From Chlorokybus atmophyticus (lineage: Eukaryota; Plantae; Mesostigma and Chlorokybus algae), in the NCBI GenBank assembly GCA_009103225.1, contig RHPI01003156.1, forward strand, positions 536,537 to 600,536: a DNA stretch of 64,000 nucleotides. The letters are read 5' to 3'. This document shows positions 24,046 through 50,599 of the stretch, piece by piece. A program made the translations under genes and the position numbers. The notes under the pieces were generated by a model that had not been told where the DNA came from, searched no databases, and saw only the letters and a program-made list of their open reading frames with translations. Positions within the stretch are counted from its first letter, which is position 1. Every line of letters begins with the position of its first letter.

Positions 24046-27000
24046 TCAATGACTTGTAATGAAACCATTTGCAGACTCCATGACAGAGGTGGAGTCCACA
24101 TTGGCGGCACGAAGCACACCCGTCAGCCACCGTTGTGCCTTGTCCGCCAAGAGCTCCCACTCACTGCAAAGGGATGCGAGTTTCGCCTTCAGGAAGGCCA
24201 GTGAGAGGGCCGTGCCCACGATGTCAGCGCGTCCTTGCGTTATAGCGGGCAGCAGGTCCTTGACATCGTCCAGCGTCACGGCCATCACCGCCGCCAACTC
24301 CTCCGTGAGCGAGAAGGACCCGTTTGAGCTTTGCAGCAACACAAGGCGCTCCAGCTTCGCACGCTCCACATCACCACCTGTCCTCTCCACCGCGCCTTGC
24401 TGCTCCTCAACATCATCCATATCCACAGCGGACCTCATATATATGTTGGAGCTGGTAGCATCCATACTCAAAGTCGGTGGAGCTGTATAACTCTCATCCC
24501 TTGCAGGAGTGTAACACTCGTCCCTCGCGTAGCGGTAGCGCATAGTCGAATTGCGTGCCTTGGCTTCAAGGGCCCCAAAGCTGCCTGGTACACTCCCCGA
24601 TGGAGCCTCCCCAGATTTGGGCATGAGCGACTCATCTGGTTTGGCTCCAGAGGCCCCAAAGTTGCCATAGGCAGCCGGTGATGAACCCACCTGAACATTG
24701 GGCGTAGTTGCCATTTGTGGGTCGACTGGAGAGCCCGCCCCTAACTGGATCATTCCAGGGCCGGAAGTCCGCCCAGAAGGCATGTACTTGGACCCAGGTG
24801 CGGGTGCGGCCATGGGCGCAGCAGCAAACGCTTGCTGCGGCATTGCTGGTGGCGGAGGTGTGGCACCGAACAAACTGTTTTTCTTGAACATACCCGTGAA
24901 ACCCGACACCACCCCCCCGAAGCCACCTCCACTGAAGCCCCTGGAGCGAGAAGTGACGGGGAAGCCCGTAGAAGCGCTTAGGAACCTGGCTTGGCTGGCG
25001 GGCGGGTACACCGGTACAGGGCGGGCCTGCATGGGCAAGGCGACCTTCTCACCGTCAGCGCGCTCCTCAACGGCGATAAATGCGGTCTCTGAGGACGCCA
25101 GCCCGAACCGCACGGCGATGTCAACTATCTCCCTCTTCAGATCGCTCTCGGAGGGCTTGAAGAGGACATCTTGGTGCAGATGGCTAGAACCTGTGACAAT
25201 CACGGCTGAGTTGTCTGTGTTGTGGTGGTGGTGGTGGTACTTATTGTTGCTTTTGCTGTTGCTGTTACAATTGTGTGTATGGCCAAGAGATAATGTTCAG
25301 ACATACCTTCTTCAAAGTCTCGAATGAGGGCTCTGGCAGCCATGCGGTGCACAATGTTGCCGCGGTAAGTGTTGTTGGGTTCGGCGGGCAGGGTGACAAC
25401 CAGCGGCCCGTCATTGGGAGTCTGTGCTGTGATTGTGACGGCTGAAGGCAACGCCGTGCCGGGCTTGAAGAAAGCGTACACGAGGAAGCGAGTGTTGCTG
25501 AAAACCGGAGGCACGCTGAACGGGGCCTGTTTCACTGCGCTGTTGCTTGCAGGAGGAGGGTTGGGAGCCTGTTCGCTTGGGGGTTTAGGCTTGAAGAAAC
25601 CCAACAAGCTCTTCTCCTGCTTCTGGTCTTGCTTGGACTCCTCCTTTGGCGGCTCAGGTGGTGAGGCAGCTGGCGGTGAGGCAGCAACCCCCCAATCAAT
25701 CTTGATGTCGGTCAGAGCGGGCTGCAGCGCCTGCTTAAGCTGCTGTATCACCGTCTTCTCTATCCGCTCGTTGCCATGCACAAATTCCGCCGTGCCCTTG
25801 CCTGCCCGAGCGATGCCCTGCATGCAAGTAAACATGAACCTTCACGTGTCTGCCAACCTAACATACACTGCGCAGGCGATAGCGCATACCTGCACGAGAT
25901 GGTGGCTGACACCATCGCCGATGCCGAGTGCAAACGTGCGTGCGGTGTTGTTGTGCGTCCTCACAAGGGAAAGGACCGCTTCCGTGTTGAACACCTGGCC
26001 ATCGGTGTACACAAACACCTGCCTGGTGTAGCCCGCCTCCTCCACGCGCGGCATGTTGTAGACCGCATGGAGCGGTTGCAGTATCTCTGTACCGCCGAAG
26101 TTGGCGTCCAACATTGACGCGTATTGCGCGGCTTCACGGAGGGTGCGATCGTTGTACTTCACGCTTTTTGGGAACAACATGTCGAAGTGCGAGCCGAAGC
26201 CTACAATGTTGAAGTAAGCATCCTGCGGCATTGATCTCAGACAAAGCTGAAGTGCCGCTCGGGCCTGCGATATCTGCGGCCCCTCCATTGAGCCGCTCCG
26301 GTCGATGATGAAGATCAGTTCAGTCTTGACATCATCGAGCTCAAAGCGTGGCACGAGTGTAATCATAGCCGCGCTTGACCCATCCTCATTGGTCTCAATG
26401 CAAAGGCGTGGCTTTGAGCTCTCTTCGGTGCTCACAAGTAGCACCAAGTCTTTGTCCAGAGCAGCCGAAGCATACAGAAGATGTGCCTCGCCCTTGACGC
26501 CATTGATGTCGCTCTTGATTTCGTGCGTCGGGGACGATATTGACCGTATCGCTGATAACATATCAAAGTGGATGTGGATGTTAAGTGCATAGCTGCCGGC
26601 ACCATCGCTGCTCAAGTCGTAGTGTATGGGCAGCTCAGTCCCCGTCATCGGCGTGTAACGTGGCGCAACCGTCGTTGGGAGGAGAAACCTCACTTCATCG
26701 CCGTGCAGTTGCAGCTCCGTCACGTAAGTTATTGATATTACCGCCGTACCCCCGGGCGGCAGATTGCCCACTTTCAGCTGGAAAATGTCAGGCTTCTCCT
26801 GCTGCAGCAAGTACGCCCCATGCCCTGCATGCACTTATTGAGGTGGCATTGGGGGCTATATGCACGCGGCAACTACCCGTTGACGTGCGCAAACCCATGC
26901 ATGGACCCACAACACGCACGCATATATGCATATGTGCGTGTGCGTGCACGCACGTGTGCACACACATGCATATGCCCACACATCGCGTGCACACACACAC

Positions 27001-39632: not shown

Positions 39633-39711
39633 TGTAACGGGAAGGTACATTAATTTTTCACAAATCAACCATAAAAGTGCCAAGTCTTTTGCGGTCGAGT
39701 GGGCTGTGACA
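39633..39711 (+). repeat. 5' LTR (79 bp)
   Basis: TGTAACGGGAAGG...GAGTGGGCTGTGACA. Confidence 0.88.
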
Positions 39712-39746
39712 TTGGTCATTGGAGTTTGAGACCCGGGTTCGATTCC
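39692..39746 (+). promoter_or_regulatory. tRNA-like RNA Pol III internal promoter (A box + B box) straddling the LTR/PBS junction
   Basis: A-box-like CGGTCGAGTGG at 39692-39702 (TGGTCGAGTGG in the 3' LTR fits TRGYNNARYGG). Perfect B box GGTTCGATTCC at 39736-39746, with tRNA-like spacing. Confidence 0.6.
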
Positions 39747-40243
39747 TGCTTTGCACACGAACTCCGCGGTCGTTGTTTCTCGATCCAATAATATCGTAAA
39801 TGGTCACTTCCAGTCAGGACGCCAGAGGCCTTCTGCTATGGTAGATTGCAGGAAACGGACGGTCGCGATGACGTCTTGCTACGTAGTACGACAGTGAGGT
39901 GTTAGCGAACACAGCTGCTCGCGTGGCGTGTTCAGTGCTCGTGTAGCTGTGTTGGTCGACGCTGTGCCGACAGTGATCACCGTTTGTTAACGGTAGTGAA
40001 TCAGCCGTTGGCGAACGGCTTTCTTGCGAGAATAGTGTCGGTTAGTGCTTCTTGATACCCGTTGCTCTCGGATTTGTGTATCTGCTTCTGTCGTGTGGTT
40101 GTGTTTGACATCGCTGATCGACAGTGGATATCTAGGCTTGCCAACGGTTGTTGTTTCAAATGTTGAAGGATAAATGGGGCGGGCGAGTTGAGGGAGGGTG
40201 AGTGGCAGTGTGTGCTGTGAGTGTCCTGTGAGTGCCGGCGGCG

Positions 40244-43200
40244 ATGGCGGAGGAAGCATCTGTGCACTTGCTTGTCGAGGAGCAACGTCGCAGGTTGGAT
40301 GAGGTGGAGGCTGTGAGGTGTTCACGCAATGACAATCAGCGTGAGTATGCAAAGCGGCGCAGGCAGGAAGACAAGTACTATGTGAACCAGCTGAAGGCAG
40401 AGTGTGGTCTGGTGAAGTCGCGGATGAATGCTACCGGTGTTTTCTTGCATGCGCTGACTTGTGGGAAGGTCTGGCGATGGGAAGGTGACAACCTCGTTCT
40501 GATGAAGGTGCGTGGTGCATGCCCTGGTGCACGTAACATGGCATGTGACTGATTGCAGGCGCACAGCGTGGCATTGTGTACTTTGTTGCTGAGTATTTGC
40601 ATGCTGTTTGCCCTACTTTGTCTTTTCCGTGCCATGCTGCGTTGCCTCTGACCTATCTTGAATGCTCTTGCGTTTTGTCTGCAGCCTGGAGAGCGTCGCG
40701 CTGTCCGTTGTGCTACTGGACAGGACTCGCAGGTAGTAGGTGTTATGCGCATGTGTGCATGTATGGATGTAATGGCAGTGTATTAAAACTGGAGCTGACA
40801 CATGTGTTCTAGCACGACGTGGACTTGGATCAGTCAGATTCAGACGAGGAAGAAGACCGGGAGGACCAGGAGAACATCTGTCTAGATTCCACTCAGCAGC
40901 GCAAGAGACAAAAGCAGCACCAGCCTGGTTTTCAACAGCAGGTCCCCTCCATACTTGCGTTGCATCAGCCATTGCATCAACACTCTCGCGTGGATCGAGA
41001 TGGCAATCGGGTCACGCTAGGGCCCATCATGAACAGGCTCCACAATTCAAGGAGTGCGCAGAAACCGCCCAGGACACCACATGCTTCTGGCCCAGGTGGG
41101 CGCCAGGGCTAGGGTGTCAAAGTTACTCTATCAGTGGCGACGCCTACAATGCTCCTTACTGGTAGCGCTCATAAGCTGAAGCAGCCTCTAGACGTTGCTG
41201 TTTACTCAGTGTTGCTATGCTGTACATAAGGCAATAAAAGTGTGAAGAGTACCTGAATGCCCGTTGTGTTGTGTGTGCAGACAATGTGAGGACTGCCACT
41301 GTGCATGCAGACACTGCGTACCGGCAGACCCGTGTGTTCAGCCAACTGGAGGTACTCGCAGTGTGTGTGGATGAGTGAATATGCATTATGCACAGTGGGC
41401 TTGTGCGGTTGGCACTGGGGGGTATAGGATATTGCAAGGTATTCATGTGTTGGAGGTGCTACATATATCTGCGAACGAGTCCTCGCAATGTGATGTATGA
41501 CTTGCATGATCGGCCACACGTGTACAGGCTGGTGTACGATTGCATATGCAAGATTGCACCTATAAATGTGTACTGAATTGCCTAGTGTGTGTTGCTAGTT
41601 CATGAGGCTCGAAGTGCAAAGGTTGTCCGCCGAGCTTGACTCCATGGGCGTGGTCAGAGACGGGTTGAGGAAGGAGGTTGAATGCTTGTCAGCAGCGTTG
41701 AGGGAGAAAGAAGCTGAGGAAAGTAGTCACACTGCCACCGAAGTGGGGGAGGCGAGGCAGCAGGCCCAACTTCTGCGTGAAAAAAACACAGTGAGCCGTG
41801 TTGATCATGTGGCAGGCCTGCAACTGCGTTAACCACGAGGAGGATGTTGAAATGTACCTGATTGTCTGACCTTGTAGGAATTACAAGAGCAGCTGCGGCG
41901 CAATGTCGCAGAGGATAATAAGCGGAGACAGGAGGCTGCGTGTGCCATACAAGACCTGAAGGATGAGTTAGAGGATGTGCAGCAGCATGCAGAGGTAGGG
42001 TGCCTGGTGACAAACACATTGCCTCATGCTATGCACGCTTGGTGCATGGGTCTCATGCTCGATACTGAACAGGTGTTGGAGACTTCTGTGCGAGAGGGGA
42101 CTGAGTTCATGAATGCAGAGAGGCGTCGGCGGCTCAGGGCTGAGCGTGATCTGGAAGGTTACCGCGGCAAGCTGGTAGAGTTGGAGGATGTAATTGCGGG
42201 TCTGCGGGAGACAGTGCGTACGAGTGGTCTTCCACGCCCGTCGCAGTATGACGCCCACGTGGCTGATGAGGTGCGGCAGTTATATGAAGGCGGTGTCCAG
42301 GAAGCTGCGAGTGAGCAGCCCGATGAGCCTCTGGGGTGTGCTGTTCGTGATGTGGCAGCGCTGCTGCTGCCAATAGACGCAGTAGTTTTCTTAACAGCTG
42401 TGGCTGCCAAGTACAACATCACTCCAGCACGCATCCTGATGAGAGCGGGTAATCAACGATTGCCTGGCGCTGTGGTGGTGGTGACTGGGGCCAGGCAGCA
42501 AGGCACCTTGCTGATCGCTGCATGGTCCGACCCTTTGCGCTGCCTGTTGCGTCATGGGATGAGGGTGACTGAAGTGCCTGTCAGCACACAGAGTCAACGT
42601 GCCACTACAAGTGCGCCAGAAGGTGATGAGCTCCCTGATGCAGTGCTGCGTACACTCGACAGGCTAATGGATGCTGAAAGGCAACGTCAAGTGGAGCGCA
42701 ACAAAGTAGACCCAGACCTGCGCGTAGTGGACTGGAAAGATGAGTGGGAGAGCTCTGGGACTGTGCTGCGACGGGTATTCGGGGCCCTGACTGGGTATAA
42801 TGCCATGGAGAGGGTGCAGTCACCAACACCTGTGCAAGTGCGGGCTGCAACCATGCAGCGCAACAAAACCCTGTTCCTGATGCACAGCACACTGTATGCG
42901 AGGAGCAAGTTTGCGTACTCAATACTGCACCTGGTGGTCACTGATGAGGTGGACATGCACTCTCAAGGCAACAAGCTCATTAAGACACTGAACCGTTTGG
43001 GGGTGGCTGTCAGCCGCAGTCATATTGATCGTCACATCCACTCCAGAGCCCTCAACAACCTTAACTCCATGGCGAGGCTGCAGCCGCGACCCGGCATGCA
43101 TGTGCTGGCATCGATAGACAACCTGGATATCAAAGCAGGACATCAGGCCAGGTATAAAGGCAGGAAGGGCGGAGACATCCATGCAACATCAACTCAACTG

Positions 43201-46200
43201 ACCTCAACACAGGGGCGTGCAGCCAACGAGCCATTGCCATTGCAGGTATTATTTGATATGTTACTGGCACGTCAGCAATGCATGGGAAGATGAAGTGCTG
43301 ACAAGCAATACTGTGTGCCTGTTGCAGCCATCCAGGAACCGAACTCTGGCTGAATCGATGATAGCAGAGCCTCAAGCAGACCCCATGCCGATGCCAGCCG
43401 CCCTGCCACGCAGAGCTGCGGTGCTGCAAAGTGGCCCCATTCTCAACCTGCAACCAGCGGAGACGGAAGCACTTGAGTGCTTCACAAACAATATGCTCAA
43501 TACTGTACTGCTCCGCATGCAACAAGATGATCAAGCCTCGCTGCCGACTCTGAAGGAGGATTGGGCGAGGTACATGCAGTTGTCAACTGGAGAGACCACT
43601 GTTGTGAAGAACGACATCGAGTACCTGCCTGTGCTTCCATTCTGTCCAGACAACATTGACAATCTCAAGCATGCGCTGTTGCAACTGCGTGCCAAGGTGG
43701 GCATCACCGATGCGAATGGCAAGATATGTGTAACCGGCGACCAGAAGACCTTTTCACTGATGCATGCCCTCAAAAAGGCAGAACCTGGATACTGGGAATG
43801 GGTGGTGCCACTGCCTGGAGATTTCCATGTGTTGATGAACATGCAGTCGGTGCTGACCAAAATGGCGTGGGATGCTGAGCTGGATGCACTGTCTTTGGAA
43901 GCGGGATTCTCTGTATCAACTGCCCGCAACCACATAGCGGACGGGTCTCACTGGAAGAAGATCCACAACTTCTTGGTCAAAGCTTGGGAGGCCCTAATCA
44001 GACACATGTTCATGCTGTGGGAGGAGGCAGAGCGGGATGAAGTCCTGCGCATGTGCAGAACATACTTGGAGCAGAACGGGGTCAGTGCCACCAAGACCAC
44101 ATCCTTTTTCAGACTGTGGTGCACAGAGCAGGCGAAGTCTGATCATACATGGCAGTTCTGGTGGAACTTTGTCAACCGTGACATGCTCAATTACCTGGGT
44201 CTCTTTTGCTCAGTGCGCCAGAAGATTTGGCACTTGAGGCTTGCAACATGGAAGGGTCTGAGCCCGCTCCCATTTGCCTGGGATTGGTACCACTACCAGA
44301 AGGTGATGACACTGCATCTCGGGGACCTGCAGCAAATGCCTTAGGATCTGCGTGACATGTTGGAATCGGGTGGCTTTGCATTGAGCCTCACCGGAGCAGC
44401 CGGTAGGATGGTGGCGCTGGATGAGGCGCACGAGTGTCAGGTGAACCGTGATATGAAGATGTCATTGTGCAGGCCAACTACTGAACAGCTGCGGCAAAAG
44501 TCATTGTACCTGGGAGAGCGCAGCCAATCTCATAAGCAATTCCAGAGGCAGTTGCTGCTAGACAACGAGCTGTTGAACAATGACCTCAACGATGATGCCG
44601 ACGACGACCACAACAGGGTGATGCGTATTTTGACGACAGATGCCTCACGATGTGGCAGTGATCTACAGCACATGTCCACGCTGCTCATCAACAGTCAAGC
44701 ACTGGCACGACCTCACCAGCAGCAGTTGCTACATCTGACATCCGGAGCTCCGGCATCAGCAGCTGCTTCCGCTGACCTGGCCCGCCAGTACTAGGTCGGG
44801 TTAGAGGCTTTGAAATCATTCGTGGAGGTCGAGTTGTGCCGAGAAGCAGCTCCTTGCAAAGTCAGTAGGCGATTCAACCTGAAAACAATGGCGGCTGCCA
44901 AGAAGCGAGTTACCAAACAGGGCACAGTGTTGAAACAGTACAGACAGGAAATGCTGGTCGTCAAGCGCCTTGCTGCAACAGGAGCAGACAAGGACGCTGT
45001 CACTGCCCGATACCGTGAACACCCTTGGGCATTATTCGAAGAGTCAACAGGCAAGATGAGGTCGGGCGATAAATCCAAATTTCTATCTGAAGTGGCTGGT
45101 CATGATGCACCATGCTGGAGCCGCATCTCGCCGCCAGGCGTGGAGTGCATCATCCTCGAGGGCATGTTCCTCATTAACAAAGAGCCACAGATCACCCAAG
45201 GCAAGATTAAGGACTACATCAGCCACCTGATGCGTACCTCAGTCCTGAGCCGTCTCGCCAACCCCACCGTGCGTAGTGTGCATGTCGTGTTTGATACACC
45301 TAGACTGCAAACCGGTGTGAAGTCTTCCCTGCAAACTGCACGGGATGGTACAGCCAGAGCATCCGGAGGATGCCTCACTCTGGACACGGAGCTACCCAGG
45401 TCTTGGCGGGATATCCTCAAGGACAGGAGTCTGAAACGCTCGCTGTGCGAGCTCATCACAGAGCATATGCCGGCCTTACTGGCAGAGCACCTGCGCCCAG
45501 ACCAAGAGGTGGTGTTCGCCGGCGGTTCAGACCACCAGCAACAGGGTGACTTTGCACGCGTGGTGGCATGCGACATGAACAATGCCACATCCATCAGCCA
45601 TGTTGAGGACTACATTTGCAATCATGGAGAGGCGGACTCGAGAGTGTGGGTGCATGCGCACAACGCTCCCTACAACAACATCCTCATTTACTCACCAGAC
45701 ACAGACGTCACGATGATCGGGGTTGCCGTGACTGAGCAGTGGGACACCTCCTTAAAGGAAGTCACCGTGCAGGTAGCGCAGAATTCCTCCGGATCCACGC
45801 GCCCTCCCTTCATAAACCTGAACATCCTGCGCCAACACGTCAACTGCATGTATCAACTTAGCAGCATGCCTGAGGGTATGCGTGGATGGTTGCTGCTTGT
45901 GGTCTATACAGCCACTGGCAGCGACTACACTTCATTCATTGGCGGCATCTCCAAGCAGTTCATCTGGCGCACGGTCCTTGCGCAGCACACTGCGTTCATC
46001 ACTGGAGATGTTAGCGGTGAAGAACATGAGATGTGCTTTGCAGTGCTTCGTCTGCTCGGATGCTCATACTTTGAGAAGTACCGATCGTCGTTTGATAGCG
46101 GCACACCAGCTTCGCTGTACTACGAGTTGCACGGGCCTGATGCTACCACATCCGACAAGGTGTATTTGGGGGACTGGTTGGAAGCCATCCATAAGACGGT

Positions 46201-46717
46201 ATGGAAGAAGATTGCTACCCCCAGGGATACTATGCCGACAGTCGATGCACTGTGGTTGCACGCGTTGCGCGCGGTGTATGCAGTGCAGATGTGGATGCAA
46301 AGCTGTCAGTCCGATATGAACATGCCTGACCTGTCCGAATATGGCTTTGAGGAGGCAGATGGAGTGTGGACCGCAGTGCAAGACCTCGCAGAGAACATGG
46401 AAGTCGCCAAGAACAATAGGCATCGGCTGATGAAGGGATGTGCCTGCAAGACCTCCAGCTGCAGGGGCAAAAGGTGCTCGTGTAGAAAGGCCGGCAAAGC
46501 CTGCACTGACAGCTGCCAGTGCCTGGGATGCGACAACCACAGTCACACCAGCCACAATGCAAATGGACATGTTTCGGGAGTCACCGCGTCACACGCGCAG
46601 ACGCCCCTAACTGGGGCAGGCCATACAGACGACGACATTGACTGGGAGTTTCAGCAGACGGACGACAGTGACAGCGACATCGAAGACCTCACTCACATGG
46701 ACTTGGACGACATCTAA
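40244..46717 (+). pseudogene. Academ transposase-XPG nuclease-CXC protein, spliced, with two in-frame TAG codons
   Basis: Coiled-coil 5' exons (structure tentative). Transposase core: SIDNLD, VTGDQKT, PLPGDFHVLMN, ALDEAHE. XPG/FEN1-like acidic motifs: LEGMFL, HVVFD, NHGEADSR, SPDTDV, TGSDY. C-terminal CACKTSSCRGKRCSCRKAGKACTDSCQCLGC. Intron 43246-43327 joins frames. TAGs at 44342-44344 and 44792-44794 are in frame, with no frameshift from 43328 to 46717. Confidence 0.88.
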
Positions 46718-46878
46718 CTGACCCCTCCCGCAAAGGCCATTACTACAGAGTTGTTGAGGCGATCTCACATTTTTAGGGTTGACCGCACAAAATCAGGGCA
46801 CAGTCCATATCGGCGGCGACGGACGGTGGTGTGGCGTCAGAAGCGCTCTGCTGGTGTGGCCTGTTGTCGTCAGCCTCC

Positions 46879-48549
46879 ATGGGGTTGACTGCATTGATAT
46901 GTGACGTCTGCAACGCATTCGTCGTCAACAATGGTCAGCGGTCACGTCTGAATCGCCACAAACAACAATGCCAGCAATACCTGGGCTGGTTTGGCTACAC
47001 TGCGGCGTGCTGGCATCATCACGCTGCAGGCCTTCACATCCTGCAGTGCAGAGGCAAGGAACGATGCATCGCTCCAGAGTTTTACAACAGTCAATGCCAG
47101 TGCAGTGAGTGTCAATGCTCTCAATTTGAGTGGCATGGGCAACCCATGCGTTACATGCCATACGTCAGGCCAGGCAGCACACCACAACCACAACAAACTG
47201 CAAGACCAAAGGTATTGCACTGCTCTCAAGTGCATGCTTGCCTGATATAGAGTTGAGCGATGTGTGAGTGACCCACTCATACGTGCGGCAGGGGAGGCGG
47301 CCGCGATGTGGTCGCGGTCCTTCTGCAATGCCATTATCGCACAGCGTCGAGAGTACCAACACCCACCCGCAACCTGGGACAGACACACGTGCCATGGAGT
47401 TGAGGGCGCGTTGTAGCAAGGGTGGCCCCTTTTTGGTGGGCTACAATGTGCTTGTGTACTGGACAGCGGACGACGAGTGGTATGGGGGCACCATTTACAA
47501 CTTCAACCAGCAGAACAGTAAGTGTTCATTGCACACACACACTGCGCTGCGCTCACCTCCTTGGACGGGCACTCACTGTTGGCTGCCGCTTGCATCAGAA
47601 CGCCACAGCGTGCGGTTCGACGACGGTGATGTGCAACACCTGCACATCCCCTTGCACAACATTGTTGTAACTTTTCCTGCCAATGGCAGCATCAGCTGCC
47701 ACCGAATCGGAGGACAGCGAGTTCAGCAACATCGCAAAGCCAATCCTCCTTGCACAGTTATCCCTTTGTGGTCCGAGTCAACAGCACTCTTACTCACAAG
47801 GACTCACATACGCGGTGATGGTGTTCCACATCGCCCCAAGTTACTCGACCTCTGCTGTGGTGGAGGTGGAGCCAGCATGGGAATGTACCGAGCAGGCTTC
47901 GATGTCACTGGCGTGGACATCCAATCACAGCCAGAATACCCATTCCCATTCATCCAAGCAGATGTGCTGACCACCGACCTGCAACCATACGACATCATCT
48001 GGGCTAGCCCGCCCTGCCAAGCGTACGCGAGTTGCATCCCAAAATCCCAACGTCAGCGTCATGCAGACCATTGGCAACACAGCACGCTGCTCCCTGACCT
48101 TCGCAAAGTACTGCAAGACAGTGGGAAGCCTTACATCATCGAGAACATACCATCCGCCGCAGATCACATGGCATCAAACTTGGTGCTATGCGGAACCATG
48201 TTCGGGCTTGCTACCTTTCGGCACAGACTGATTGAGACCAAGCCCATGCTTACCTTAGACTTGGTGTGCGATCACGCATCCAAGAGCTTAAGCTCCCTAT
48301 CCTCACACACGACAACAAGAGTCAATGCCCAAGACTCGCAGGCAACACAACAGATGTTCCCTGTCTACGGGAAAGCAGCATCTCGTGGCACACTCACCGG
48401 TTGGCAGCAAGCTCTGGGCATCGAATGGATTTCATTCAGAAACCACTTTAGTCGAATGCATCCCCCCCGCTTACTCAGAGTACATTGGCAGGCTGATGCT
48501 TGAGCACCTAGGGTACACAGTGAACAGCAGACCATTATCATGGTCATGA
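46879..48549 (+). CDS. Cargo gene: putative Zn finger/Cys-rich + Tudor-like domain + C5 DNA-cytosine methyltransferase (phage/bacterial type); +1 frameshift near the C-terminus
   Basis: Exon 46879-47211 (CDVC..x12..HKQQC, Cys-rich). Intron 47212-47291. Tudor-like LVGYNVLVYWTADDEWYGGTI..|HSVRFDDGDVQHL with intron 47518-47598. MTase motif I LDLCCGGGGASMG, GVDI, catalytic IIWASPPCQAY, motif VI YIIENI, LCGTMFGL..FRHRLIE. An extra T at 48447-48449 shifts motif X (LVECIPPAYSEYIG); stop TGA at 48547-48549. Confidence 0.85.
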
Positions 48550-48969
48550 CATAGAACTTGGGCTAGTCTACATCGATACACACAGAGCAAGCACGTTATT
48601 AACATGCAGTTGTTGCTATGTACAAGCTGGTCAAAGCAGCTGTCTAACCAACCACCAACCCCGAAGACAGGATCAGTGTGCCTCACGACTTCGTGCACAG
48701 CTGGGCAACATGCACAAGTGTTCATTGGGGTTGTGCACAGCACACCACATCCACACCCATGCAAACTGAAATGAAGCACACCACACAAACAAATCAGGCA
48801 TTGTCCCTCAGTACAAATGCACTCGCAGTTGCTAGCTGCATCTCCACTAATGCACGTTGCGCAACGCTCACCGGTGAGCACAGACAATGCTACATGTACA
48901 AGACATAGCAGTTAGCAGCAGAATTAACCATGACACATCAAGCAGTGCCAACAACTGCTACCAACCTAG

Positions 48970-50145
48970 GCCGGTGTCTCTTGCATATGGCAATTAGCCT
49001 CCTGGAGCTTGGTTGCGCGCGTGCGAATGAGGGGCTGCATCAACGCGTTCAGCGAGACTTCAACAGGCATTGCTCTACCACTCAGCAGAGCAGTATATCA
49101 AGCCAACACAGGAGCACGCAAACAGTCAGCATACAGCAGCAATTCTTATACACCAGCATGGCATCGACTGCAAAAGTACAATTGCGAACACTGTACCATG
49201 TTGGAGCGGAAGTACTGGCTGCCACCCACCACCCTCCACTGCAGGAGGCGGGTGAGGCAAACCAGGATTGCCATCATCACCATGTTCGCCACCTTGCAGC
49301 ATATGCAGGCTCCACTGCCCAATCTCGAACGGCAACCACTCAGTGTCATGCCACTGCTCGACCCAATGTCGTCGGCGACCCGGCTCCATATCACAGTCAG
49401 TGCCAATAACCCAGCGTGCTAAGACAACCCCCCCCACTACATGCTCCACAACCAACAAATCACTACTCAAGCGCAGAGGCAAGCCTCCACCACGCCGTAC
49501 ACGGTGCAAACTATACCGGAACCCAAACCCACCCGGCAACTCCACATGCAATTCCCTCAAACCATCGCCCAATGGAACCCCAGACGCTGATATGCGCACT
49601 GGACATCCCAGTGGCACCTAACAACAGACACACAGTGAATGTTGGCAACATTCCAAGACGCACATTACTGCCGCATGCAAACACCTAAAGTAAAACAATT
49701 TAGTTAGACAGCCAGCATGCTCACCTGTTCGTAACCAGATTGGTAGAACGATCCACTACGCCTGATATGCGGCAAAGGACCGCCTATCGATACAGACACA
49801 CTCAGTGGGGCGTGGTCGTCATTAACGCCGGGCGCAGCCATCACACCCAGAACACCGACAGCCACAACGAACCCGCCGCCAGGACCACAACTACCCGCCA
49901 AAACCCGCACCCCAAACAGGGCGATATCACCGCCAGCCTCGATATCGACTTAACCAAACGCAATATTTTAACAACACGGCTACACCATCAACCACTGACC
50001 GACAGCGCTGTCCACCGTTTACCCTAAACTGCAAATCCTTTACGCAACATAGCCCACAGTCACACAGCGTCGGCACAAGGCTGATCGACAGCACAAGATC
50101 GACATCTTCAACCACTGATTCGACACTGATCCAGCGACGCAACAA
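48970..50145 (-). CDS. Possible third, spliced gene of unknown function inside the Academ element
   Basis: Codon-like minus-strand segments (LRELHVELPGGFGFRYSLHRV; HWVEQWHDTEWLPFEIGQW; ...GSFYQSGYEQ|GTGAGC donor). Strand composition mirrors GT-rich sense introns. Exon structure not resolved. Confidence 0.35.
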
Positions 50146-50599
50146 AGCACCTCAAACCGTCCAAATTCGTGGCGGATACAACCACCTAGACGGTGTCGAT
50201 AATCGTAGCACAACACAGACAAACGTTACGCAACAAAGCGACACAGCTCGTCCACAGCACCCACAGAGCTCATCGGGCCGGTTTAAGCTTTGCCTGGGCG
50301 GAAGGCCTCTGGCGTCCTGACTGCTTCATAAGTGCCATCATCCAAAGGTCGCGACTTGCCTAATGGCAGTCGCGTCTGACTGACCAGTTCAGTCGGCGCG
50401 GCAGGACGCGACCTGCCTGTCGCGATGCGACCTGTGGGGCCGGCAGCGGTGCGCTATGCGCGCGCTGACCGGTATTGGCCTAAATTGGCCGGTCCTTGGG
50501 TGGTGGGGCCGGTGACCGACCCTAAATCAGACCCCTGGGAAGATTCCCCAGCTGATGGGCGCCAGCTGCCGAGGACGTCAGCGTTCTTAAGTGGGGGGA

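Follow-up and report, generated by a model that had tools for sequence, protein, structure and literature searches.

In a 64,000-nucleotide stretch of the Chlorokybus atmophyticus genome (contig RHPI01003156.1; here called the window, to which all coordinates refer), we analyzed an element of 10,513 bp (39811-50323) that has the anatomy of a cut-and-paste DNA transposon. Downstream of its transposase-nuclease gene, and in identical orientation, lies a second gene. A preliminary description had placed the start of this gene inside the terminal inverted repeats (TIRs), about 160 bp after the transposase stop; its ATG is found at 46879, 161 bp downstream of that stop, and the TIRs measure 26 nt. 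With three predicted exons, the gene encodes, as judged from its sequence, a Cys/His-rich N-terminus, a Tudor domain of the RDM15/PDS5C type and a minimal C5 DNA methyltransferase (MTase). We refer to it as the cargo gene.

Architecture of the element and its genes

The TIRs are complementary at 25 of 26 positions (96%), and the element is flanked on both sides by the same four bases, CTTC, as target-site duplication (TSD; Table 1). The corresponding empty site was found in X1, the sole public sequencing run to contain this DNA (of low coverage and with no type recorded). In four of its contigs, left-flank-like sequence (...ATCGTAAATGGTCA) continues directly into CTTC and the right flank at 50324. 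These contigs represent paralogous copies of the highly repeated host sequence around the insertion. TIRs, TSD and empty site together demonstrate precise cut-and-paste insertion with a 4-bp duplication, and the element was inserted as a single unit into repeated host sequence. Elsewhere within the window, neither an empty site nor a second copy was detected. The host repeat flanks the element at 39700-39810 and 50213-50400, with a summed X1 contig depth of 77 in the latter interval.

Removal of two predicted introns from the cargo gene restores one reading frame. Both introns, of 80 and 81 nt and with GT..AG borders, had been proposed in the preliminary description, and splicing is predicted for both; the X1 contigs showed no splice joints. 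Intron 2 is additionally supported because the alignment of the spliced peptide with a Tudor domain of known structure has no gap at the junction. Matches to Tudor domains appear only after splicing, as Pfam and NCBIfam searches with the raw open reading frame (ORF) gave none for the Tudor part or for exon 1. The C-x2-C-x12-H-x3-C finger, the Cys-rich stretch of exon 1 and the MTase motifs were all located where they had been described. Exon 1 has no Pfam match, and a search of the ESM Atlas with it gave no more than weak leads to zinc fingers (score at most 0.85).

Across the element, all three predicted introns (43247-43326, 47212-47291, 47518-47598) have lengths of 80-81 nt and GCAG or TCAG at their 3' ends, which suggests a narrow intron size class in the C. 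atmophyticus genome.

Table 1. Features of the element and its borders in window coordinates (introns and exon joins are predicted).
Feature	Position	Strand	Remarks
Left TSD, CTTC	39807..39810		identical 4 bases at 50324-50327
Left TIR, begins CAGTCAGGACGCCAGAGGCCTTC	39811..39836	+	26 nt, inverted-repeat pairing with 50298-50323
Transposase, large upstream exon	41878..43246	+	open frame; coiled-coil-rich N-terminal part
Transposase, predicted intron	43247-43326	+	80 nt, GT..AG; joins exon 41878-43246 to next frame
Transposase-nuclease reading frame	43327..46717	+	stop TAA 46715-46717
DUF6589 core	~43604-44023	+	PF20231, E-value 4.9e-10, 39.1 bits versus cut-off 27
FEN/XPG-fold nuclease	~45119-45850	+	predicted-structure matches and conserved motifs
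Tesmin-type CXC domain	~46433-46540	+	PF03638, E-value 1e-5
Cargo gene, exon 1	46879..47211	+	C2HC finger C-x2-C-x12-H-x3-C and Cys/His-rich stretch
Cargo gene, predicted intron 1	47212..47291	+	80 nt, GT..AG
Cargo gene, exon 2	47292..47517	+	linker and first three Tudor strands (from ~47421)
Cargo gene, predicted intron 2	47518..47598	+	81 nt, GTAAGT..CAG, phase 1
Cargo gene, exon 3	47599..48549	+	Tudor end (to ~47670), linker, C5-MTase domain 47835-48549, stop TGA 48547-48549
3' non-coding part of element	48550..50297		CA-rich, no recognisable gene
Right TIR	50298..50323	-	pairs with left TIR
Right TSD, CTTC	50324..50327		left-flank-like sequence joined directly here in four X1 contigs

The transposase-nuclease gene identifies the type of transposon. 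Three ORF pieces of the window are collinear with one uninterrupted protein of 762 amino acids (P0127), and single animal proteins that are collinear with the transposase pieces also contain DUF6589. The end of the product of the large upstream exon is weakly similar to another protein (P0124), and the interval 40232-41832 probably contains further short 5' exons. Clusters of DUF6589 proteins come from rust fungi, Mucoromycota and arthropods, which fits the published hosts of Academ elements. Pfam models for XPG were silent on the nuclease region. Nevertheless, this region has invariant acidic residues (E279/D281, S300/D302/D304) in ExD and SxDxD motifs that are common to sponge and mussel proteins, and a conserved SGCDY-like motif. 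The AlphaFold model of the region is good only in its core. For residues 109-352, nearly all best structural matches are 5' nucleases of the FEN/XPG/Xrn group with Z-scores of 7.1-9.2 (VIA-align; Xrn1 9.2, GEN1 7.9, mycobacterial FEN 7.8, XPG 7.4, EXO1 7.4; Rat1 and T5 exonuclease also fall within this range).

AcademX elements are characterised by a TSD of 3-4 bp and by a transposase and XPG-type nuclease in one protein (PMC10045372, summarising Kojima 2020). The 4-bp TSD, the DUF6589 core and the predicted FEN/XPG-fold nuclease in one frame, with relatives in sponges and mussels, fit an AcademX-like transposon when set against this published signature, in line with the earlier assignment to Academ. 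A Pfam search found no reverse transcriptase or integrase between the TIRs. In the 3' part of the element (48550-50297) there were no tandem repeats and no ORFs with a credible Pfam match, and an Rfam search of the window found nothing.

The methyltransferase and Tudor domains of the predicted cargo protein

The MTase domain has the motifs LDLCCGGGG, SPPCQ, ENI, LCGTMFGL and ECIPPAY, and it keeps the R-H-R motif. In motif I, the loop predicted to bind S-adenosylmethionine (SAM) reads LDLCCGGGGASMG; its residue G94 is invariant and the neighbours are nearly so (36-61 homologues). Residues S136, P137 and C139 of SPPCQ (catalytic Cys codon 48015-48017) and E181 and N182 of ENI are invariant as well, and in a profile match they pair with the corresponding motifs of DNMT2. 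Altogether, 16 of the 16 invariant residues of a 36-sequence family alignment are kept. Between motifs VIII and IX, the cargo MTase has about 25 low-complexity residues and no MBD.

A total of 3706 homologues of the MTase were found, with a best E-value of 3.7e-59, which excludes a chance match. Most are proteins of about 210 amino acids with 40-50% identity and E-values down to 1e-46. Some of them are named DNA cytosine methyltransferase, and many carry a precomputed PF00145 match. When the single MTase was compared with the PDB by phmmer, only generic loops of SAM-dependent methyltransferases were obtained. The family profile identified DNMT2 (1.5e-6), the E. coli cytosine methyltransferase 3g7u (3.5e-6), M.HaeIII (1.4e-3) and DNMT1. 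The AlphaFold2 (AF2) model of the domain has predicted local distance difference test (pLDDT) values of 80-98, and the best 50 Foldseek matches in the PDB are all DNMT1, DNMT3A/B, M.HaeIII or M.HhaI (E-values 2.3e-6 to 3.7e-5).

Sequence, profile and predicted fold thus agree in supporting a C5-MTase as product of the cargo gene, in line with the compact enzyme of the preliminary description. The separation from DNMT1, DNMT2 and DNMT3 also held, as these are only remote profile or fold matches.

For the Tudor domain, the spliced 68-residue peptide was used as query. It matched seven Pfam families, all of the Tudor clan (PTM/DIR17, SETDB1 Tudor_5, BAHCC1, Crb2, KDM3B, a MORC2 chromo-like model and 53BP1), with E-values from 2.6e-4 to 0.08. 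In the PDB there was one clear match, 7DE9 (E-value 2.9e-7), with 17 of 49 residues identical (35%) over peptide residues 7-55 and no gaps. In this structure, an H3K4me1 peptide is bound by the Tudor domain of RDM15/PDS5C from Arabidopsis (PMC8184781). The aromatic cage of the domain consists of Trp616, Tyr623 and Tyr641, while Asp643 and Asp645 hold the protons of the mono-methylammonium group (PMC8184781). In the alignment, these five positions are occupied by W, Y, F, D and D in the cargo peptide, and the phenylalanine keeps the ring. The cargo Tudor is therefore probably a methyl-lysine reader that prefers low methylation states, and H3K4me1, though not established, is the leading candidate for the mark. 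Of the earlier label "Tudor/Agenet-like", the Tudor class stood and could be refined to the RDM15/PDS5C type; recognition by the Pfam Tudor models did not reach their cut-offs.

The plant Tudor domains of RDM15/PDS5C and MSH6 (Niu et al., 2021, PMC8184781) share with the cargo domain an aromatic cage of W, Y and Y/F and two aspartates that select mono-methyl-lysine. They tether their proteins to chromatin through a flexible linker, as is predicted for the cargo protein. Unlike RDM15 and MSH6, a cohesin cofactor and a mismatch-repair protein, the cargo Tudor is fused to a DNA methyltransferase, and the contacts to H3R2 differ.

Ancestry of the methyltransferase and decay of this copy

The MTase had been called phage-type, which is correct for the wider family and not for the nearest relatives. 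The family includes 310 phage records, mainly from Mycobacterium and Streptomyces phages, with 34-41% identity to the cargo MTase and annotated as DNA methyltransferases. The best matches are longer proteins of 280-350 amino acids, most of them with an MBD (PF01429) between motifs VIII and IX, the interval that usually holds the target-recognition region of C5-MTases. The contigs of these relatives are dense and intron-free, and encode B-family DNA polymerase, topoisomerase II, ribonucleotide reductase, kinases and many ORFans. One relative is part of a giant-virus metagenome-assembled genome of IMG/VR (L063).

In a careful IQ-TREE run with 65 sequences (supports given as UFBoot/SH-aLRT), the cargo MTase falls into a clade of 22 rows from giant-virus-like contigs (97/94). 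Twelve rows of the MBD type form a clade of their own that excludes the cargo MTase (96/94), and the placement of the latter within the 22-row clade has a support of 55/0. An insertion after motif IV (IIPxxQRExHGHxWxH) and a tail (LGYTxxYxPxxY) are common to the cargo MTase and the clade. By its sequence, the cargo MTase is thus a member of a family of stand-alone bacterial and actinophage enzymes of about 210 amino acids, and within this family it groups with the giant-virus-like clade.

The relatives are diverse in architecture. Small C5-MTases with an inserted MBD are found on giant-virus-like metagenomic contigs (L001:8803-9858, L003:10001-10843, L087:2028-3050, L085:8001-9317); with the MBD in this place, the writer would contain a reader of its own product, an arrangement suggestive of a maintenance-like enzyme. 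In several of these relatives, the catalytic PCQ has been lost (SPPCF, SPPCM and SPQCH in P0002, P0003 and P0005). Four metagenomic proteins (P0001, P0128, P0178, P0192) consist of two complete small MTase domains fused in tandem, 380-450 amino acids in all, and in two of them the first domain begins mid-way, as if circularly arranged.

In a HMMER search of 1.84 billion representative proteins with the 411-residue ORF, the Tudor part was unmatched in the best 150 of 3874 matches; multi-exon eukaryotic genes are poorly represented in this set, so that this is weak evidence of absence. The longer matches of this search were tandem double MTases or proteins of the MBD type.

The cargo gene of this copy is frameshifted, as noted in the preliminary description. 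From the W codon (48430-48432) to the conserved IPP there are 34 bases instead of the 33 required (TLVECIPPAYSEYIGRLMLEHLGYT..., frame displaced by one base). A single extra base can be placed between 48433 and ~48445, because the spacing from W to PP is 11 residues in 35 homologues. It puts motif X (ECIPPAY) out of frame and thus removes this motif and the C-terminal tail. A 368-nt X1 contig that covers 48168-48535 has no differences and no gaps; this contig and the assembly may derive from one sample. An error in the C7 homopolymer was considered as cause of the frameshift and rejected, since the frame of L-x-x-C-I-P-P matches the family and the independent contig is identical. A mini-intron that would remove the frameshift was also rejected, as the spacing in homologues fixes a single extra base.

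The transposase frame is broken by in-frame TAG codons at 44342-44344 and 44792-44794, which the preliminary description did not mention. The residues that flank the first of them are adjacent in P0127, and both are therefore nonsense codons rather than intron content. Mini-introns that would remove the TAGs were rejected on the same ground; the 42-nt GT..AG candidate at 44303-44344 would also have only half the length of the three accepted introns. As the MTase is frameshifted and the transposase has two nonsense codons, this copy can make neither protein, and its sequence is that of a dead relic.

In both genes, the observed/expected ratio of CpG is 0.63-0.67, versus 0.77 in the flanks, and the ratios for TpG and CpA are 1.5-1.65. 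The two nonsense codons in the transposase frame are both TAG, and a CAG to TAG change would be at a CHG site. CpG depletion and the TAG codons are compatible with decay by deamination of methylated cytosines, and with past cytosine methylation.

Cargo status, alternatives and comparison with known elements

Neither TIRs nor long terminal repeats (LTRs) nor a duplication bracket the cargo gene, and there are thus no scars of a nested insertion around it. As the gene is enclosed by the ends of a precisely inserted element and lacks brackets of its own, it moved with the element, and travelled as a passenger at least once, unless it entered after landing. Overall, we consider it likely that the locus is a decayed transposon of AcademX type with a Tudor-C5-MTase gene as cargo.

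Several observations weigh against this reading or parts of it. The MTase scores 18.2 bits with PF00145, below the cut-off of 22 (E-value 0.0018). All Tudor models of Pfam also score under their curated cut-offs, and in the AF2 model of the ORF with its intron-coded insert, the Tudor part has pLDDT values of 37-56. Glu647 and Gln654 of RDM15, which bind H3R2 (PMC8184781), correspond to Q and H in the cargo Tudor, so that these contacts are lost and the histone site read is uncertain. Introns and splicing of the cargo gene are predictions, and the join of exon 1 to exon 2 is deduced from the GT..AG borders, the reading frame and the intron length of 80 nt. That the nearest MTase relatives are viral is concluded from the gene content of metagenomic contigs, which we call giant-virus-like for this reason. 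Only the absence of insertion scars, in a single copy, speaks against a later insertion into this one element. Finally, there is no methyltransferase within 10 kb of the one Academ-like element retrieved from a different organism, and the MTase cargo is therefore lineage-specific. This element (L004:8142-11758, on a eukaryote-like contig of an ENA metagenome) encodes a related transposase-nuclease with 30% identity over 539 residues.

The last two points bear on the alternative that the Tudor-MTase gene belongs to the host, or to an independent mobile unit, and came into this element before or after its last move. It would account for the Academ-like relative that has no MTase, and only a single copy was read here. 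However, the gene is found between matching TIRs of a precisely inserted element, shares the orientation of the transposase, begins at a short distance from its stop codon and is not bracketed. Even a late acquisition would have moved when this copy was inserted, unless it entered afterwards. We regard this alternative as unlikely.

It appears less probable still that the enzyme does not methylate DNA in vivo, and instead either methylates RNA (tRNA) at m5C like DNMT2 or is an inactive module that binds DNA or chromatin. DNMT2 tRNA methyltransferases are the best profile matches in the PDB, some giant-virus relatives lack the catalytic PCQ, and the target-recognition region of the MTase is very short. 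On the other hand, SPPCQ, ENI and R-H-R are retained in the cargo MTase, the phage members are annotated as DNA methyltransferases, and DNMT1, DNMT3, M.HaeIII and M.HhaI hold the top Foldseek ranks. Moreover, for an enzyme fused to a histone reader, chromatin is a more plausible substrate than tRNA. A remnant of an endogenised giant virus, with the transposon merely in or next to viral DNA, would suit the giant-virus-like contigs of the nearest MTase relatives and is nonetheless very improbable, as the cargo gene has predicted introns of spliceosomal type and a plant-type Tudor, other viral genes are found neither in the element nor in the window, and TIRs and TSD delimit the complete unit within a host repeat.

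If the locus is indeed a transposon with a reader-writer gene as cargo, its history and function might have been as follows. The catalytic domain would have been acquired from a giant virus or from a shared donor, and the gene would then have gained introns and the fusion to a histone reader of host type. In intact copies, the Tudor would dock on a mono-methylated lysine, most likely H3K4me1, a gene-body mark in plants, and hold the MTase on such chromatin, where it would write 5-methylcytosine (5mC). The element could benefit by self-limitation, by mimicry of host gene-body methylation, or by protection of its DNA from virus-encoded nucleases. Self-regulation, host mimicry and target-site marking, the roles proposed in the preliminary description, are hypothetical. 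A broader version, in which transposons of at least three superfamilies in the Chlorokybus genome share a giant-virus-derived MTase tethered by a Tudor of H3K4me1 type, and intact copies write 5mC on transcribed chromatin, is doubtful.

Eukaryotic DNMTs that join a reader to a writer include CMT, with a chromodomain for H3K9me2, and DNMT3, with a PWWP domain for H3K36me. The cargo protein similarly joins a predicted histone-methyl reader to a C5-MTase. Unlike CMT and DNMT3, it is encoded by a transposon, and both its catalytic lineage, which is unrelated, and its class of reader differ.

Mobile elements with a C5 cytosine methyltransferase of their own are known among retrotransposons, namely SymbioLINE-Dnmt and SymbioDIRS-Dnmt3 of dinoflagellates and Copia-DNMT of the charophyte Klebsormidium (de Mendoza et al., 2018, PMC5890265). 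They are present in many copies, and a role in the relation of the element to host silencing has been proposed (PMC5890265). The element described here shares the principle with them. Their enzymes are mostly DNMT3-type or belong to an orphan DNMT clade, and are encoded within or adjoining reverse transcriptase ORFs, whereas here a DNA transposon carries a minimal MTase of phage/giant-virus type fused to a putative histone reader.

Genes for DNA-modification enzymes have also been described as passengers of cut-and-paste transposons. In fungi, TET/JBP dioxygenase genes occur in 11 lineages of DNA transposons, including KDZ, Plavaka, EnSpm, hAT and Helitron (Kojima 2025, PMC12730594), and the gene is shared among unrelated superfamilies of one genome (PMC12730594). 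Academ is not among the 11 lineages. Unlike TET/JBP, which removes or oxidises 5mC and so would allow escape from silencing, the passenger of the Chlorokybus element would write it.

A giant virus is host to Mariner-1_OLpv, a Mariner transposon with genes for an EcoRII-like endonuclease and a C5 DNA methylase (Bao and Jurka 2013, PMC3627910). Both this element and the Chlorokybus element are DNA transposons with a C5 DNA methyltransferase gene and a link to giant viruses. In Mariner-1_OLpv, this is part of a restriction-modification-like pair in a viral genome, and the methylase is a canonical enzyme of 344 amino acids with neither introns nor reader. The Chlorokybus element is nuclear, has no endonuclease partner and has the predicted Tudor fusion.

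In the literature, we found descriptions of such MTase cargo only for retrotransposons and virus-borne transposons, and none of a methyltransferase passenger in AcademX or of a C5-MTase joined to a reader in any nuclear cut-and-paste transposon. Recent surveys of eukaryotic DNMTs used PF00145 at E < 1e-4 (PMC12344493) and would therefore have missed the cargo MTase. The same could apply to similar genes elsewhere, as the family lies under this threshold.

If confirmed, a 5mC writer of viral ancestry that is guided by a reader and carried by a nuclear cut-and-paste transposon would be the missing case in the series. DNA methylation is usually viewed as a weapon of the host against transposons. 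In the broader version above, which is doubtful, transposons would be a source of gene-body-like methylation, or would immunise nuclear DNA against giant-virus nucleases, rather than being just targets. A transposon with such a gene would also link giant viruses, transposons and host chromatin by one flow of genes, and provide a very small reader-writer module of about 500 amino acids that is directly testable. The contribution of this dead copy is that both ends, the target duplication and the empty site are available together.

At a distance from the element, on the minus strand of the window, an ORF at 25842-26834 contains VIT and von Willebrand factor A domains (VWA_3, E-value 2e-23) and is probably an exon of a host gene.

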